DNA of 64,000 nt from Utricularia gibba (lineage: Eukaryota > Plantae > Magnoliophyta): NCBI GenBank assembly GCA_002189035.1, contig NEEC01000011.1, positions 2,356,001 through 2,420,000 on the forward strand, read 5' to 3'. Below are positions 47,524-55,820 of the stretch, piece after piece (the first letter of the stretch is position 1; each line of letters begins with the position of its first letter). The translations under genes were made by a program, and so were the position numbers. Below the pieces are notes generated by a model. That model was given only the letters and a program-made list of their open reading frames with translations, ran no database searches and was not told the origin of the DNA.

Positions 47524-49062
<1,539 letters not shown>

Positions 49063-49894
49063 TTCGAGCAGTAAGGTACCACTTTGTCTAAAGTTGCGAG
49101 AGAAGATACTTGTGGCATTAGTGTGATATGCATTTTATAGTGTGAAATGGGATGATGTTTTGGATATGTCGATGGATAACATTGCTGGATTCTTCTGGAC
49201 ATCTGGATTTTTGACAACCAATGAGAGCCTGAGGCTCAGATTTCTCCATGGGGGGAGGGCGTGGGCTTGTCAGTAAATCGATGGTCTTTGATAGGTTCCC
49301 ATCAGATGCCGGGCCCATCTACTCAGAGATAATCCTATCTATTTTACATTTTAATGTTTTTATTTTAAAATATAAATATCTCAGATATAATAAAATAATA
49401 TTTATTTACTGGTCGAAAGCATTGTACTAAAATTCGAGTAGAATTTTGCCGTATTTCGCCTTTTTGATCGAGATTTAGGTTTAAATCAAGGTAAATTGTG
49501 TTTAACTTGAATTTGTAGTTAAAATAATGACTGAAATTCCCTCAAAATTATGACCCTCTTATCTTTTTTTAATTTTTACTTTAAATTATATAGAATGGAA
49601 TTAATTTTAAGAGTCTTTATGAATGAATTCAATTTTTCATATTGTTAACTGTTTTATAAAATTATATTTTAGATTTTAATATATTATATATTGTAAAATT
49701 GAATAGGTTAAATTATTGTATAATTTACTGTAATAATATAATTTTTAAAATATATTGAAAAAAAGATTTAATAAATTCAATAATTACGTAAATTAATAAC
49801 ATAATTTGTATTTCTCATATTCTCTAATAATAAAATAAAATTAGAATTCATGTCAAAAATTACGTATGTTTTAATATGTGCAGTAAACAAATTG

Positions 49895-50000
49895 TGGGAA
49901 GGGCGGTTTCCCGATACCGCCCACTCCGACTACCGGACTGACGTCAAGGGTCAGATTCGATGGCAGGAATGGGAGGGATCGGAAAACCCTCGGCTGATGT
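49895..50000 (-). ncRNA. MIR482: Candidate miR482/2118-family precursor, copy A
   Basis: On the minus strand, TTTTCCGATCCCTCCCATTCC (49986-49966) pairs with GGAGTGGGCGGTATCGGGAAA (49927-49907) over ~21 bp with 2 mismatches and 2 G:U pairs. The pyrimidine arm is antisense to GGA ATG GGA GGG ATC GGA AAA (GMGGIGK, NB-ARC P-loop). The strand is inferred from the promoter at ~50180-50260. Confidence 0.72.
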
Positions 50001-50179
50001 GCTCGAGAATACCACTTTTTGTTCCGATTTCCTTTTTGTTGCTTCAACAAAGAATCAGATCCGAAACCGACGCTGAGAGATCGAGATTTTGAAAGACGCG
50101 ATCGACGGCAGAAAGAAAGAGAACTCGTCGCAGATCTGTGATCTGGAAGCGGTTGAGGTGGTGATATGGAGGAATCCAA

Positions 50180-50260
50180 ATGGGCCTTTGGATCCGATTA
50201 AATGGGCTTGTTTTTCTTTAACGGGCCAGCCCAATTGAAGCTTCTTTAAATAAGCCCTCC
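50180..50260. promoter_or_regulatory. Putative bidirectional promoter with site II (TGGGCY/GCCCA) motifs between the two miRNA hairpins
   Basis: ATGGGCC (~50181), ATGGGCT (~50201) and GGGCCAGCCCA (~50223), plus an AT-rich TTTAAATAA at ~50246 followed by a CT-rich leader. No function shown. Confidence 0.45.
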
Positions 50261-50408
50261 GCCTCGTCCATTTTCTTCTGTGATCCTCTTTCGTCGGGTC
50301 GACCTTCTTCTCTTCATGCAGTATGGCTGCTCGCTTTGAGATTGTTTAGGATTAGCGTCGCGATGATCAAATAAGATTTGTTGTTCGATTGGGAGATGAG
50401 GCGAATTT

Positions 50409-50512
50409 GTTCAGCCGTTTCCAATGTCACCCATTCCCACTGTCGGAACGGCGGTTGAAGCTACTCAGGTTGTAGGAGTGGGTGGTGTCTGGGAAAATCA
50501 CGGTGGCTCAAT
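50409..50512 (+). ncRNA. MIR482: Candidate miR482/2118-family precursor, copy B
   Basis: TTTCCAATGTCACCCATTCCCA (50418-50439) pairs with GTAGGAGTGGGTGGTGTCTGGGAAA (50472-50496) with a 1-nt bulge, one mismatch and several G:U pairs. Lower stem TTCAGCC/GGCTCAA. It differs at 3 positions from the tomato/potato miR482a sequence as I remember it (UUUCCAAUUCCACCCAUUCCUA). Confidence 0.72.
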
Positions 50513-50946
50513 CAGTCAGAAAATGAAGCAATGGCGGCGGTAGATTCAGATCCAGCGAAGAGATGGAAGCTTATCGGATTGGCTGAGGTGGGGGTTTTGG
50601 CATCCTTTTGCCGCTCCTCCTCCTCCGACCAGTAAATTTGGCTGTAGGGATCTCTTCTCTCGTTAGATTCTCAGAAAGATGTTCGTTTACAAAATGCAAC
50701 CCTTTCAGTTGGATTCAATGGTATACGAAAACCGCATCTTGCTATTTATCATCCCTGTTTGTCTCGATTTTGAGTCAGGATGGCTTTCGCGAGGCTCTTT
50801 GTTAGCTCGAATTTCAGAAACCATGGCGGATTTACATTCAAAACAAGCAAGTAAAGCACATCAAGTCGACCATGGAGGGTCTCCCCCTGGTAGATCTGAA
50901 CATGAACACTACACATCACATCTTAGAGCAGTAGCGCAGAAGGAGC

Positions 50947-51609
50947 CTAGACTCGGCCGGCGGCAACCCCAGCTTTGGGTTCAGCCCCCGTGCCGTAGGT
51001 CGGGTCCCCGTACCCGGGTCCATATCTGCTACTGAAAACTCCAGAATGGAGGAGGACAACGTACAGCAACTGAGTGAACGCCAGAACTATGACGAACCCT
51101 TCCAGGACTCTCAGATTCCACCCTCTGTACCCTCCTATATTGATCTGCTTGCACGCCAACCTGCAACAAATCATAAAGCATTTCTTTGCTTGTGCACAGG
51201 TTCTTCCAAGGAACTGAAAATGGTGGGTGCGAACCCGAAGGCGAGTGCAGTCACAGCCCACGATAGAATGGCAGTTGATCCAGCAGCTGCGAGGCTGTCG
51301 CTGCGCCACGCTCGGAGATGGCTTCCGCCGGCCACTTTGGACACGATTCCTAGCACCGCCGCGAGTATAGCGAACGTCAGGAAAAACCCGGTCGCCCCGT
51401 TTCCTCCATGTCTGCACAGAAGGAAGGATAGCTAACAAGTACAATAAAAAACACAGTGACTGATGAATGGAGAGAGTGCGTGGGGAACTACTGGGGTGAT
51501 TCGTCTGCCCATTGATGTACTTGTTCAGGCACCAGCTCGCGAAACCGAGCACAATGAAATACATGATGAGGTTCAGAAACAGCAACGGGGCTGCGAATGC
51601 TCTCGCCAT
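50947..51609 (-). CDS. AWPM-19-like (PM19) membrane protein, 3 exons
   Basis: MARAFAAPLLFLNLIMYFIVLGFASWCLNKYINGQTNHPS / GNGATGFFLTFAILAAVLG...LRAWRSDSLAAAGS...WAVTALAFG / LACKQINIGGYRGWNLRVLEGFVIVLAFTQLLYVVLLHSG. Confidence 0.92.
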   Translation of the reverse strand: MARAFAAPLLFLNLIMYFIVLGFASWCLNKYINGQTNHPSSSPRTLSIHQSLCFLLYLLAILPSVQTWRKRGDRVFPDVRYTRGGARNRVQSGRRKPSPSVAQRQPRSCWINCHSIVGCDCTRLRVRTHHFQFLGRTCAQAKKCFMICCRLACKQINIGGYRGWNLRVLEGFVIVLAFTQLLYVVLLHSGVFSSRYGPGYGDPTYGTGAEPKAGVAAGRV

Positions 51610-51694
51610 TTTTTTGCAGAACGGAGCTCGTGGAAAACCCAGAAGGCACTGCCGAGAAGCTTGGCGTGTGCAGCATAAATAACAGAATGGGGAA

Positions 51695-51830
51695 ACACCA
51701 CGTGTCCGTTTCGCAGCCTGTGAAGGTTGCACGCGTCGGACACCCGTCCCGCAGCTTCACTTTTTCATGCGAGAAAAAAAAGCCGTCACAGCCATTGATC
51801 CATCGCCGGGACGCCGACACGTGGACACGG
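51695..51830 (-). promoter_or_regulatory. ABRE/G-box cluster upstream of the AWPM-19 gene
   Basis: CACGTGTC at 51699-51706 and CACGTGG at 51818-51824, with a TATA-like TATTTATG on the minus strand at ~51675. AWPM-19 genes are known to be ABA-induced. Confidence 0.55.
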
Positions 51831-51938
51831 CCGGAAAAAACACTTCAACCCACGAATAAAAAAAAATCAGTCATCCCAATGGTTACCAACAGCAGGAATG
51901 CTACTGCTCCTATTCGCCTGGCAGTTTTTCACTCAGTT

Positions 51939-54531
51939 TCATTCGTACAAGGTTTGGTCGTTCCTTGAGTAACTCCGTGGCCTGTAGAACCCATTCCCTC
52001 TTTGTGGCCGGATGTAGTCGCCTTCGTCTTGATTGTCGATTCTCCGGCCGCCCCTCGTGCCGTCCGTCGAGTAACTTCCCCTGCCTCTGCCTCTGCCTCC
52101 TGTTGGGAAGCAATAAGGTTACTTGAGGGTAACGGGGAATGAGGGAAGACAGTTTTGAATGCTTACTCCCGCCTCTGAACAGGGTGCTTCTGTTTGGCCT
52201 CCGGCCTTCGATGTATAGCTGGTGACCTCGGATTTCAACGGCGGATGCCTGTAACGGAGGATCAAACCATGAAACTCCATTGTTGGAACAAATGGTCAGT
52301 TAATCAAGGTGCGTGGTGAGAGCCTGGGGGAGTATTATGCAAGTGGAACATAGCACTACGCCCATTGGATGGGTTGGAGCTTGATAGAGGATCCTTAAGA
52401 GGTATGTCTAAACTTGAGAGCAAAATGGGATTACCTTGATCGCGTTTTGGACACCAGACATGTCTTCAAATTCAACAAAAGCATAGCAGGCATCGATGTC
52501 CTGCAAACATTTTCCACCATGGTTCTGATATGTCGAGGAGAAAGAAGTGCAGAACCGAATATTGACAATGAAGCAGGAGACAGCAGGAAAAGCCCACCTT
52601 CCGTGTCCGAATGGCCACTCCCTCGGTAGTGAGTTTACCGAACTTCTTGAATTCTTCCCCAATTTCAGAGGCAGACATATTTGTAGGAACATTTTTACGT
52701 ATACCGACTTCATTTCAACTGCCAGAAAAAAAGAGGCAGTAAAACCAGAGGATTAATGAAGAAGGTAATGTTGACACAAGCACTTTGACATTATTTCACT
52801 ATATAATGAACAAATAAACAAGTAGAGATAAACATAAAAAGTTACCTTCATCATCCAATGGTGTTGTTTCGTCCAGAATCTCAAGACCAGAGAGTTCCAG
52901 AGTGTTTGATGGTTCAGTCAATGGGGTTTCAGGAATTTGCTGCAATTCTGACCGGGCAGATGGCTTGTTCATAGCTGGTGGAGGCTGTGACTTTGCAACT
53001 ATAGAAGCATAGGTATGTTTCTGGGGCTCCCCAACCGGCTCTGGAACCGGGGAAGAGAGACGATCCGGCAGGGAACTCACAGTTCCCGCTGAAGTATTTG
53101 AGTGGACAGCAAAGGTATCCTCCACAACATTTCTTGATTCGTCAGCCTGCTGATTTTGCTCCTCGAGGTAGCCATAATTGTTAAGATAAACACCATTTTC
53201 AGTTTCAACCGCAGGGTGAAATTCTCTGGAATGAACATCTTCAGCTAGGATGTAATTGGGCACTGGAAAGGTTACCACATGAGTCTCAAGAAGCAAGGTT
53301 GCAGCTCATATTTACGCAAAGAAAATGATACACTCATGCCACACATGTTCATGGAGTAAGGAAATCAAAATTCAGTAACCATGCACAAACACCATTCGCC
53401 GGCCAACTCCTTGAAAACATTTTTCCTGGCTTAAACGAACACAAAAGAATTCCCTTCGATTTTAATTCTAAAAAAACAATTCAAAGAATCACATCAGAAA
53501 AGATGGCTGAGAGAATGAACCTGGTTCTTGAAAAGAATGGAGCTTTGACTCAAGATTGCTCTTATGTGTGTATGCCATCGGATGCTGCAGAATTTGTTCT
53601 TCGTCGATATAATGGAACATATCAGTAAGAACAAAGTAGCCCTTATCTTGGGGGGCAAGAAAGAAGGTCTCCATAAATTGCCTTCTTCCACTGAAACCTT
53701 TTAGACGAACTGAACCAGAAACCATTACTAAAATACCGTGGTTCCAGGATTGCAAGGAGTGTGCAGTCTTGATGTCTATTTCCACATAGTTCAGGGACAT
53801 TACAAGCTGGTGAATTTGCTGCAATTAACAAAAAAAAATCAGATCTCCTCCACTAAACATATCCATTAAGAAACATATTTACGATGCAACAGACATTCTA
53901 CTTCGTAGCAACAAGAGATAACATGACCATATTATAGTAGGTTCACATTCAATCTATCGACACATGAACACTTGGAAAACAAAACAAAAAATGGCCAAAA
54001 AAGTACCAGCATGTCGCTGGCAGAATCCATCAAGTTTCCATCAACGCGGAGCATGGTGCTGCCATCACTATAAAACTGATGGAGGAAACTTGGCCGATTC
54101 TGAAGCATTTGGTAGTATTGCTTGACAAAGTAAGTACCCACCTACAAAAATTTGACGAAGTATCACCAAAATTATCCACAAACAACAACAAAGAATACCA
54201 AATGCATCTTTTCTACAAATAAAAATGCTTTCTTTATCCGTCCTCGTAGCCATAAACAAAACTCAATCCCGTTACCCAAACACCCAATTAAAAGTCACTA
54301 TTCCTACATTCAGAATGTCACCATATACCCTCAGCTATTCCAAGTAGTAAAAAAGCATACTCCCTCAAAATGTAAACTCCCTCAGAAGTATTCCGGCACC
54401 CAAAATTCTGAGATACAACAATATTTTTCGCGCAACAGCGGCAATAACATGAACCAAAAGTTTTTGAAAACCAAGGAATGATAAATACGAACCTGGGCAG
54501 CAGTGACCGGTAGAGGAAACGTCGCCGCCAT
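51939..54531 (-). CDS. NTF2-domain + RRM + RGG protein (G3BP-like)
   Basis: MAATFPLPVTAAQ / VGTYFVKQYYQMLQNRPSFLHQFYSDGSTMLRVDG / DIKTAHSLQSWNHGILVMVSGSV...FMETFFLAPQDKGYFVLTDMFHY. RRM KSVYVKN...ACYAFVEFEDMSGVQNAIK, then an RG-rich tail. Confidence 0.9.
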
Positions 54532-54899: not shown

Positions 54900-55820
54900 G
54901 ACGCCGGGTCTGGATGTTGCAGTTCAGATGTTCGATGAAATGTCGGACAGGGATGAGGTCTGCTTAGCCGCCGTGATCAACGCCTTCGCGAGAAATTCTC
55001 GCCACGTTGATCCTTTTACGGTATTTCGCCGAGATCGACTTCTCATAGTGCTTCCGGCGCGATGCGTGGACCTTCTGCGACGGCGATGCTCGATCATTGT
55101 ATGGTGGCTATTCATGCACATGCTCGATAAATCCAGCGTTGATCGACCGGTACGGCTTTGCAAGATATTCTTCTTCACAGTATTTCGCCGAGATCGACTT
55201 CTCATAGTGCTTCCGGCGCGATGCGTGGACCTTCTGCAACGGCGATGCTCGATCATTGTACGGTTGTTTTTCATGAGCATGCTCGATAAATCCGGCGTTG
55301 ATCGAACGGTAATGCAAGTGTGGCCTAGCTCTTTCGAATGGAAAGTAAACATGGAAGGGATGAATCTGCTAGTGAGCTTTTCATGCCTATGGAAAGGTAA
55401 AGAAACAGAGTCATATGGTTATAGGTCCTCGGCAGCTGTAAAGGCATTGCTCAAAAACATGAAACAGAGAACAGGGAACAAAAACATGAAGCTGCATTGC
55501 ATATCAGAGTTGCAGGTTGAGCACTGCACATGTTTTAGTGGGCGCATCGGGACTGAAGGAAGATTACATGACGCAGAGAAAGTTCCGCAAACAAGGGAAA
55601 CCCTAAACTTGCTAAGAGGATCAGCAAGAAGCTCTGTGATATCAACGGGGGCAATGATTGAGGCTTTGTCATTTTAGATAATGCGGAAGCAAGTGACAGA
55701 TGATGCAACAAAGGTAACGAAATATGGAAGATGATGGAATAAGAAGGCGCAGCTGAGAAGAGGGAAATCCTAGAAAAGGATAAAGAGAGTCTAAATGGTA
55801 TGGTGATACCTGGTGAGTGA
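54900..55820 (+). pseudogene. Decayed PLS-E PPR gene fragment
   Basis: PPR-like pieces in changing frames: MFDEMSDRDEVCLAAVINAFARNS, SASGAMRG...IHAH, EHCTCFSGRIGTEGRLHDAEK (compare EHYTCLVxxLGRAGRLxDAE), and E-domain-like EIWKMM. Many indels and stops. Confidence 0.7.
55018..55311 (+). repeat. Direct tandem duplication, ~134-bp unit with a 159-bp period
   Basis: GTATTTCGCCGAGATCGACTTCTCATAGTGCTTCCGGCGCGATGCGTGGACCTTCTGC... begins at 55021 and again at 55180, with few substitutions. Confidence 0.95.

Follow-up and report, generated by a model that had tools for sequence, protein, structure and literature searches.

A head-to-head pair of predicted miR482/2118-like hairpins with P-loop-antisense 5′ arms in Utricularia gibba

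Results

Overview of the locus

Positions 49895-50512 of the 64-kb stretch of Utricularia gibba DNA analysed here (mint order Lamiales), from now on referred to as the window, contain two stem-loops, hairpin A and hairpin B. They are located back to back at a separation of about 420 nt, with a cluster of site-II promoter motifs between them. Hairpin A (49905-49988) folds best on the minus strand; each arm contributes 31 positions to its stem, which is topped by a helix of 5 bp and a loop of 7 nt. The 24-bp stem of hairpin B (50414-50504, plus strand) includes five G:U pairs, and its apical region is weak. The presence of two homologous hairpins at this place, one on each strand, had been claimed in an earlier note on this DNA, and both the folds and the pair tables confirm them. 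Judged by their sequence, A and B are probably a pair of miR482/2118-like hairpins, that is, microRNA (miRNA) genes which would silence disease-resistance genes of the NLR class (for nucleotide-binding and leucine-rich repeat), with their overall status as miRNA genes being a prediction.

Structure of the two hairpins

The 116-nt minus-strand fold of hairpin A has an energy of -48.9 kcal/mol (z -4.17), which was reached by 0 of 200 dinucleotide shuffles. The fold check suggested in the earlier note thus returned a strong, non-random hairpin on this strand. According to the pair table, 49988-49958 pairs with 49905-49935, with four 1x1 mismatches and zero bulges. The 88-nt core of the hairpin reaches -44.8 kcal/mol, corresponding to a minimal folding free energy index (MFEI) of 0.86, and the hairpin is also formed within a 289-nt model of a minus-strand transcript. 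The 5′ arm holds a guide-like 22-mer, TTTCCGATCCCTCCCATTCCTG (49964-49985, minus strand), which has U as its first base and is the complement of codons for GMGGIGK. Three base pairs lie below this segment, while 14 nt and the 7-nt loop lie above it. The predicted star (49906-49927, minus strand), derived from the pair table with 2-nt overhangs, starts with G and is part of a purine-rich arm that resembles P-loop coding sequence in sense orientation. Each of the 22 guide positions has one position opposite it on the other arm, and those in 1x1 mismatches are 9, 12 and 21. The duplex ends are of different strength: the 5′ end of the guide is weak (U-A and U-G pairs) and the 5′ end of the star is strong (G-C pairs). 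The annotation guidelines of the field describe plant MIRNA hairpins as foldbacks of less than 300 nt with at most five mismatched duplex positions, at most three of them in asymmetric bulges. Hairpin A, with three mismatched positions of which none is asymmetric, lies within these limits.

Hairpin B folds at -40.3 kcal/mol on the plus strand and at -28.1 kcal/mol on the minus strand. Because of the five G:U pairs and the weaker minus-strand fold, the plus strand is taken to be the meaningful one. The plus-strand hairpin expected by the earlier note is present, while its strength beyond shuffled sequences is weak, with a z-score of only -1.43; the MFEI of its core is 0.64. The guide-like 22-mer of B, TTTCCAATGTCACCCATTCCCA (50418-50439, plus strand), is again found on the 5′ arm. 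Both bulges in the pair table are located on the 3′ arm, namely the single base C50489 and the five nucleotides 50495-50499. By the same guidelines B is borderline, as its minimum-energy fold contains one mismatch and two bulges, one of 1 nt and one of 5 nt, the latter at the very end of the duplex.

At a distance of 26 nt past B begins a 34-codon open reading frame (ORF; 50530-50634, plus strand), whose ATG is in a good context, and neither transcript nor family support was seen for it. The first 32 nt of this ORF have a 72% copy at 50817-50848. A protein-coding reading of the locus, based on a 102-aa minus-strand ORF and on the 34-aa ORF after B, was considered and rejected, both being without family match and without transcript support.

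Similarity to miR482/2118

A degenerate miR2118-type pattern matches nothing in the 64 kb apart from the arms of A and B (three matches compared with 0.13 expected). The 22-mer of A is identical to the published miR2118 UUUCCGAUUCCACCCAUUCCUA (PMC5048172) at 19 of 22 positions, counted by eye in an assumed register. For B, a scripted count, with the register likewise assumed, gave 19/22 identical positions relative to can-miR482b UUUCCAAUUCCACCCAUUCCUA (PMC3667847). Both are thus within the cut-off of about four mismatches to known members that is used for family membership of mature sequences. The miR2118 used for comparison is an Ammopiptanthus/Medicago sequence, whose 5p partner is a GGAUAUGGG-type star (PMC5048172). 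A chance origin of the two hairpins was also considered and was rejected, since the pattern is enriched, the arms are paired and the fold of A has a z-score of -4.17.

As expected of the family, both 22-mers are antisense to GMGG[I/V]GK, the P-loop codons of NLR genes. The earlier note had described the pyrimidine-rich arms as antisense to GMGGIGK, and the complement of the 5′ arm of A translates exactly so. The complement of the 5′ arm of B translates to GMGDIGN, in which the D codon still pairs with the G codon via G:U wobble. It had also described the partner arms as sense P-loop sequence reading VVGVGGIGK. This is seen in the 3′ arm of A, with the 3′ arm of B giving VVGVGGV. Besides A and B, no P-loop-like site that could represent a template or a target was found elsewhere in the 64 kb. 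Rfam scans of 48000-52500 and 49850-50550 with E-values up to 10 did not find a MIR482 or MIR2118 match, the presence of such models in Rfam having been deduced from the Rfam-style family names in PMC5048172. The sole matches at this threshold were chance-level ones between A and unrelated miRNA models. An exact-sequence literature search for both 22-mers found no paper.

Arm layout and guide length

In both A and B it is the 5′ arm that carries the guide-like strand; the usual layout, which does not strictly define the family, has a 3′-arm guide and a 5′-arm star. In a miRBase-based survey, all 99 guide-type miR482 sequences are found on the 3′ side and the 41 sequences on the 5′ side belong to other groups (PMC11353999). 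Guide-type sequences in a pine table are likewise located on the 3′ arm. In litchi, the 5′ arm is the source of the mature miRNA at three of 13 MIR482/2118 loci, Lc-miR482b, Lc-miR482d and Lc-miR482e (PMC10955497). The earlier note had presented a 5′-arm guide as exceptional and had itself named known loci of this kind as speaking against that view; the layout is real, but litchi provides the precedent. The predicted pair is a probable addition to the members of the miR482/2118 type, in a 5′-arm layout already known from litchi. The earlier note had added that either strand shows the reversed order. This is a property of every hairpin, following from symmetry, and adds nothing. A metagenome scan for the 5′-arm layout yielded two matches, both of them chance or low-complexity.

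A hallmark of the family is an asymmetric bulge in the guide strand that gives rise to a 22-nt miRNA (PMC10955497). Because such a bulge is absent from the guide strands of A and B, neither a guide length of 22 nt nor the triggering of phasiRNAs (secondary small interfering RNAs produced in phase) has structural support. The 22-nt length given in the earlier note was an assumption that the structure does not imply.

Putative NLR vestiges beyond the duplex

Both hairpins carry NLR-like sequence outside the miRNA-like duplex. The putative vestige of A (49874-49942, minus strand) covers loop, 3′ arm and 3′ flank, with LDVSPVVGVGGIGKPPFPQFVYCTY in frame and then a stop; beyond the duplex, the sense arm of A reads VSPVVGVGGIGKPPFPQFVY in frame. 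The putative vestige of B (50469-50517, plus strand) reads VVGVGGV, followed by a one-base slip at about 50490 and then GKITVAQSV. This frame slip coincides with the stem bulge at 50489. Flanking residues were scored with BLOSUM62 against the published P-loop motif of coiled-coil NLRs (CNLs; PMC5437156), with the core excluded and six-frame windows of the 64 kb serving as background. The eight residues after GK, compared with the CNL motif TTLAQLVY as a consensus chosen post hoc, gave p 0.0011 for A and p 0.0007 for B, the latter becoming about 0.002 once three frames are allowed for. With VSP, the three residues before the core, added to the flank of A, its score corresponds to p 4.7e-5, again with a consensus chosen post hoc. 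The consensus residues that have been kept differ, being Q, V and Y in A and T, A, Q and V in B, which points to an ancestral GKTTLAQ.VY. Pfam searches with the 102-aa minus-strand ORF and a 29-aa NLR-like piece, together with a PDB sequence search, gave zero matches.

Young miRNA genes have been proposed to form by inverted duplication of their target (the model of Allen et al. 2004 as summarised in PMC5026261), and P-loop-targeting miRNAs have been born repeatedly and convergently from NLR inverted repeats (PMC5026261, PMC4651229). In most members of the miR482/2118 superfamily, likeness to the nucleotide-binding site (NBS) is absent outside the mature sequence (PMC5026261). The long near-perfect foldback of a recent inverted repeat was not found at this locus, where the stems comprise 24-31 positions with mismatches. 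Of the two origins put forward in the earlier note, the NLR-fragment origin is tentatively favoured by the CNL-like residues after GK and an arm-swapped MIR482 lineage less so.

Inverted duplication and the region between the hairpins

Between A and B, the 5′ arms are identical at 16 of 22 positions (73%) and the 3′ arms are about 85% identical, while the loops have diverged by about 40%. Compared with shuffles, the loops align better when A is read on the minus and B on the plus strand (p 0.005), and not when both are read on the plus strand (p 0.5). Loops that are alike only in inverted orientation indicate that the whole hairpin was duplicated inverted, in line with the homology by inverted duplication that had been proposed earlier. 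With arms that differ by 15-27% and loops that differ by about 40%, this duplication is not a recent one. A 16-nt direct repeat (14/16 identical) is formed by 49893-49908, just outside A, and 50441-50456, inside the loop of B. It is not collinear with the A/B inverted duplication.

The site-II promoter motifs that the earlier note had seen between the hairpins comprise three hexamers at 50181, 50203 and 50228. Together with a TTTAAATAA box at 50245-50253, they make up a promoter-like region (50181-50253, no strand), and the box is followed by a pyrimidine-rich tract. The three hexamers lie within 55 nt; the 64 kb contain 44 such hexamers and only two 60-nt spans that hold three of them. We infer that 50181-50253 may act as a bidirectional promoter. 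Further, the outer arms 49900-49935 and 50468-50505 (plus strand) pair with each other at -46.3 kcal/mol with about 24 contiguous pairs. This complementarity exceeds that within either hairpin, and a read-through transcript would form a long-range duplex.

RNA coverage and neighbouring genes

RNA coverage was assessed over 49000-51800 using contigs of four RNA-labelled runs, all contigs being strandless and the library type of one run, X1, being a guess as RNA. The X1 contig (49862-50046, no strand) is 185 nt long with a depth of 7.8 and contains hairpin A with flanks of about 45-60 nt at either end. It is the only X1 coverage in this interval, with the adjacent intergenic DNA and the neighbouring genes uncovered in X1. 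In the other three runs the neighbouring genes are covered and neither hairpin is. Coverage confined to A argues against DNA carry-over in X1, and hairpin A is probably expressed. The contig and the window differ at two positions, 49894 and 49898, both outside the stem of A. An ATTAAA motif at 49875-49870 (minus strand) is located just before the end of the X1 contig, and a short minus-strand primary transcript of A is plausible from the sequence. It should be noted that X1 (about 25,000 contigs) lacks the gene encoding protochlorophyllide reductase (POR), which is seen at depths of 95-567 in the other three runs. The source of X1 may be a non-green tissue or a special library type.

The neighbours of the hairpin pair are a thioredoxin-m gene, the POR gene, whose first exon ends near 49107, and a PM19L/AWPM-19-like gene (transcript 50812-51708, minus strand). 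Within PM19L, at 51403-51412, a contig of run X3 has one extra base in the C run at 51406-51407 (five compared with four in the genome). Exons 1 and 2 of PM19L are out of frame in the window, and the extra base restores a normal 170-residue protein, which in its frame-corrected form is 80% identical to the Sesamum alatum protein. This points either to an error of the assembly at the homopolymer or to an allele with a frameshift. Elsewhere in the window, 54924-55677 contains overlapping ORFs of 249 aa (plus strand) and 142 aa (minus strand), each with an internal duplicated block of at least about 30 residues, which points to a gene or repeat with a tandem duplication of about 200 nt.

Three Lamiales thioredoxin-m loci (Sesamum, Erythranthe and Abeliophyllum) and six PM19L loci from five species (Sesamum alatum, Buddleja, Erythranthe with two assemblies, Forsythia and Fraxinus) were compared with the window. 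The best PM19L orthologues among these loci show 78-80% identity. At the nine loci, none of which is syntenic in the sense of having POR adjacent, neither a P-loop-antisense motif nor BLASTN similarity to 49100-50900 was found. At the loci of the best PM19L orthologues (Sesamum alatum and Buddleja) such a motif was not found within 10 kb, consistent with a lineage-limited origin.

Discussion

We tentatively propose, with a confidence slightly short of even, that A and B are a diverged head-to-head pair derived from the P-loop fragment of a coiled-coil (CC)-type NLR gene, with A representing a working copy and B a weaker paralogue. The sequence leans towards an NLR-fragment origin over a rearranged MIR482 gene because the 3′ arms keep residues of the CNL P-loop motif beyond the duplex. 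A CC-NLR P-loop fragment would first have given rise to an inverted repeat, with the antisense copy as the 5′ arm and the sense copy as the 3′ arm. The whole hairpin would then have been duplicated in inverted orientation, and both copies would probably be transcribed outward from the site-II-rich region. Hairpin A would be the working or better-preserved copy, and B a weaker, perhaps decaying paralogue.

The hairpins, their likeness in sequence, the inverted homology, the NLR-like residues and the one RNA contig over A are observed, and the direction of transcription, DCL1 processing, strand choice and targets are predicted. DCL1 would cut A from loop to base and release a 21-22-nt duplex, since the guide-like segment has only 3 bp beneath it, with 14 nt and the 7-nt loop above, and only cutting in this direction would give the register. 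AGO1 favours strands with a 5′ U and a weakly paired 5′ end. Loading of the 5′-arm, P-loop-antisense strand of A into AGO1 is predicted because it combines a U start with the weaker 5′ end, its partner having a G start at the G-C-rich end. The loaded guide would pair with the GMGG[I/V]GK codons of NLR mRNAs and lower the mRNA level, as miR482/2118 do.

Several observations weigh against this proposal. The fold of B is weak (z -1.43) and its stem unstable in context, the lower stem being captured by upstream sequence in a 521-nt transcript model. Hairpin B has no coverage in the four RNA-labelled runs, and the X1 contig that covers A is strandless and comes from a library whose type was guessed to be RNA. 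The guide-strand bulge is missing, A being symmetric and B carrying its extra bases (C50489 and 50495-50499) on the opposite arm, and the Rfam precursor models are matched by neither hairpin. The NLR likeness outside the core is short, the consensus for it was picked after the peptides had been seen, and Pfam and PDB are blind to it. Finally, among miRNA paralogues the guide arms are usually the better conserved ones. Here, identity between the copies is higher for the 3′ arms (about 85%) than for the arms presumed to hold the guide (73%), with counts too small for significance.

Some of these points would be accounted for if the pair were a relic, that is, a decayed NLR-fragment inverted repeat with little or no transcription, no precise DCL1 cutting and no regulatory role, which resembles miR482/2118 through the shared P-loop template only. 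We consider this fairly unlikely. Hairpin B suits such a relic well, as it folds no better than many shuffles and shows no coverage in the four runs. The missing guide bulge, the lower conservation of the presumed guide arms between the copies relative to the other arms, and the absence of visible conservation at the Lamiales loci compared (three for thioredoxin, and six for PM19L from five species) fit as well. Hairpin A suits a relic less well: its stem is clean (z -4.2) despite about 40% loop divergence between A and B, suggesting that the stems have been maintained, and an RNA contig is confined to it. A cluster of promoter-like motifs is also located in the right place, and the 5′ U and end-stability asymmetry of A fit a guide.

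A quite unlikely alternative retains the proposed function and derives the pair from ordinary MIR482/2118 genes by rearrangement. For example, the miRNA arm of one gene in a tandem cluster could have become paired with the star arm of the next, with loss of the outer arms resulting in a 5′ guide. MIR482/2118 genes are often clustered and litchi has 5′-arm members, which favours such a route. So does the 19/22 identity of the 22-mers with known members, seen in the miR2118 register, but that identity is expected of anything antisense to GMGGIGK codons (PMC5026261) and the register is assumed. The residues past the duplex, which resemble the CNL motif, speak for an NLR fragment instead, as most superfamily members are without such NBS likeness (PMC5026261), and the Rfam precursor models are unmatched.

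It is very improbable that one plus-strand transcript spans both hairpins, with 49966-49985 pairing with 50418-50437 and the star-5′/guide-3′ order restored around a loop of about 430 nt. An unconstrained plus-strand fold of 49880-50530 does pick exactly these long-range pairings (-215.3 kcal/mol, vs -202.4 kcal/mol with pairs limited to 150 nt), and the outer arms, 5′ of A and 3′ of B on the plus strand, pair at -46.3 kcal/mol, above either local hairpin. The intervening 430 nt, however, look like a promoter (site-II cluster, TATA-like box and pyrimidine tract), the sole RNA contig ends at 50046 with 50047-50811 uncovered, and the local hairpins would be expected to fold first during transcription. 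It is likewise very improbable that the purine-rich 3′-arm strand, sense to the P-loop, is the functional product, acting on antisense transcripts or as a decoy, with the pyrimidine strand as passenger: the 3′ arms are better conserved between A and B (about 85% vs 73%) and the extra base of B lies on the 3′ arm, making the purine strand longer, but this strand has a G start at a strongly paired end, neither of which favours its loading into AGO1, the arms do not differ significantly in conservation and a target class is not evident.

Returning to the proposed NLR-derived pair, a stronger version of it is possible, if doubtful, in which A and B represent a separately born, lineage-limited P-loop-targeting gene whose passenger arm still reads as CNL in frame (VSPVVGVGGIGK..Q.VY) and which was then duplicated around one bidirectional promoter. 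If true, this would be a legible convergent re-invention of miR482/2118, in a genome that may contain ordinary members of the family as well. Should small RNAs confirm the predicted guides, U. gibba would represent a second plant lineage with miR482/2118-type guides from the 5′ arm, and a case in which NLR ancestry is still readable in the precursor. The pair would then bear on how often NLR regulators are re-invented as opposed to inherited, and the absent guide bulge would allow the triggering of phasiRNAs by such a copy to be tested. The known picture of NLR control by miR482/2118 is unchanged by A and B.

Among known systems, the litchi loci Lc-miR482b, Lc-miR482d and Lc-miR482e share with A and B a family-type mature sequence from the 5′ arm of the precursor (PMC10955497). 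The litchi loci are backed by small-RNA sequencing, whereas A and B are predicted, and the conserved guide-strand bulge giving 22 nt described in the litchi paper is absent from A and B. Legume miR2118 and can-miR482b resemble A and B, respectively, in their 19/22 identity, in the same P-loop target codons and in the U start, and also, should the register be as assumed, in being of the miR2118 type in this respect. Legume miR2118 occupies the 3′ arm, opposite a GGAUAUGGG-type 5′ star (PMC5048172), the reverse of A and B; the source of can-miR482b (PMC3667847) gives no arm.

With respect to origin, Norway spruce MIR482q and related long precursors (PMC4651229) are similar to A and B in having an arm that reads as NLR coding sequence beyond the miRNA, and this is taken as a sign that they originated when an NLR fragment was duplicated in inverted orientation. 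Each spruce arm measures about 176 nt and shows clear BLASTP similarity, whereas the stems of A and B comprise 24-31 bp and the likeness covers about 8-11 residues outside the core, significant by a targeted test only. In spruce the coding-like arm is the 3′ arm in reverse complement and the miRNA is on the 3′ side, in contrast to the 5′-side guide of A and B. A further parallel is provided by miR6024, miR6026, miR1510, miR2089, miR5300 and miR472 (PMC5026261), which, like A and B as proposed here, are lineage-limited, NLR-born hairpins converging on the P-loop site; the sequence of miR2089 is confirmed by a Medicago paper, which does not confirm its arm. Those independent families have their own mature sequences and registers, whereas A and B would be named miR482/2118 by the similarity of their mature sequences.

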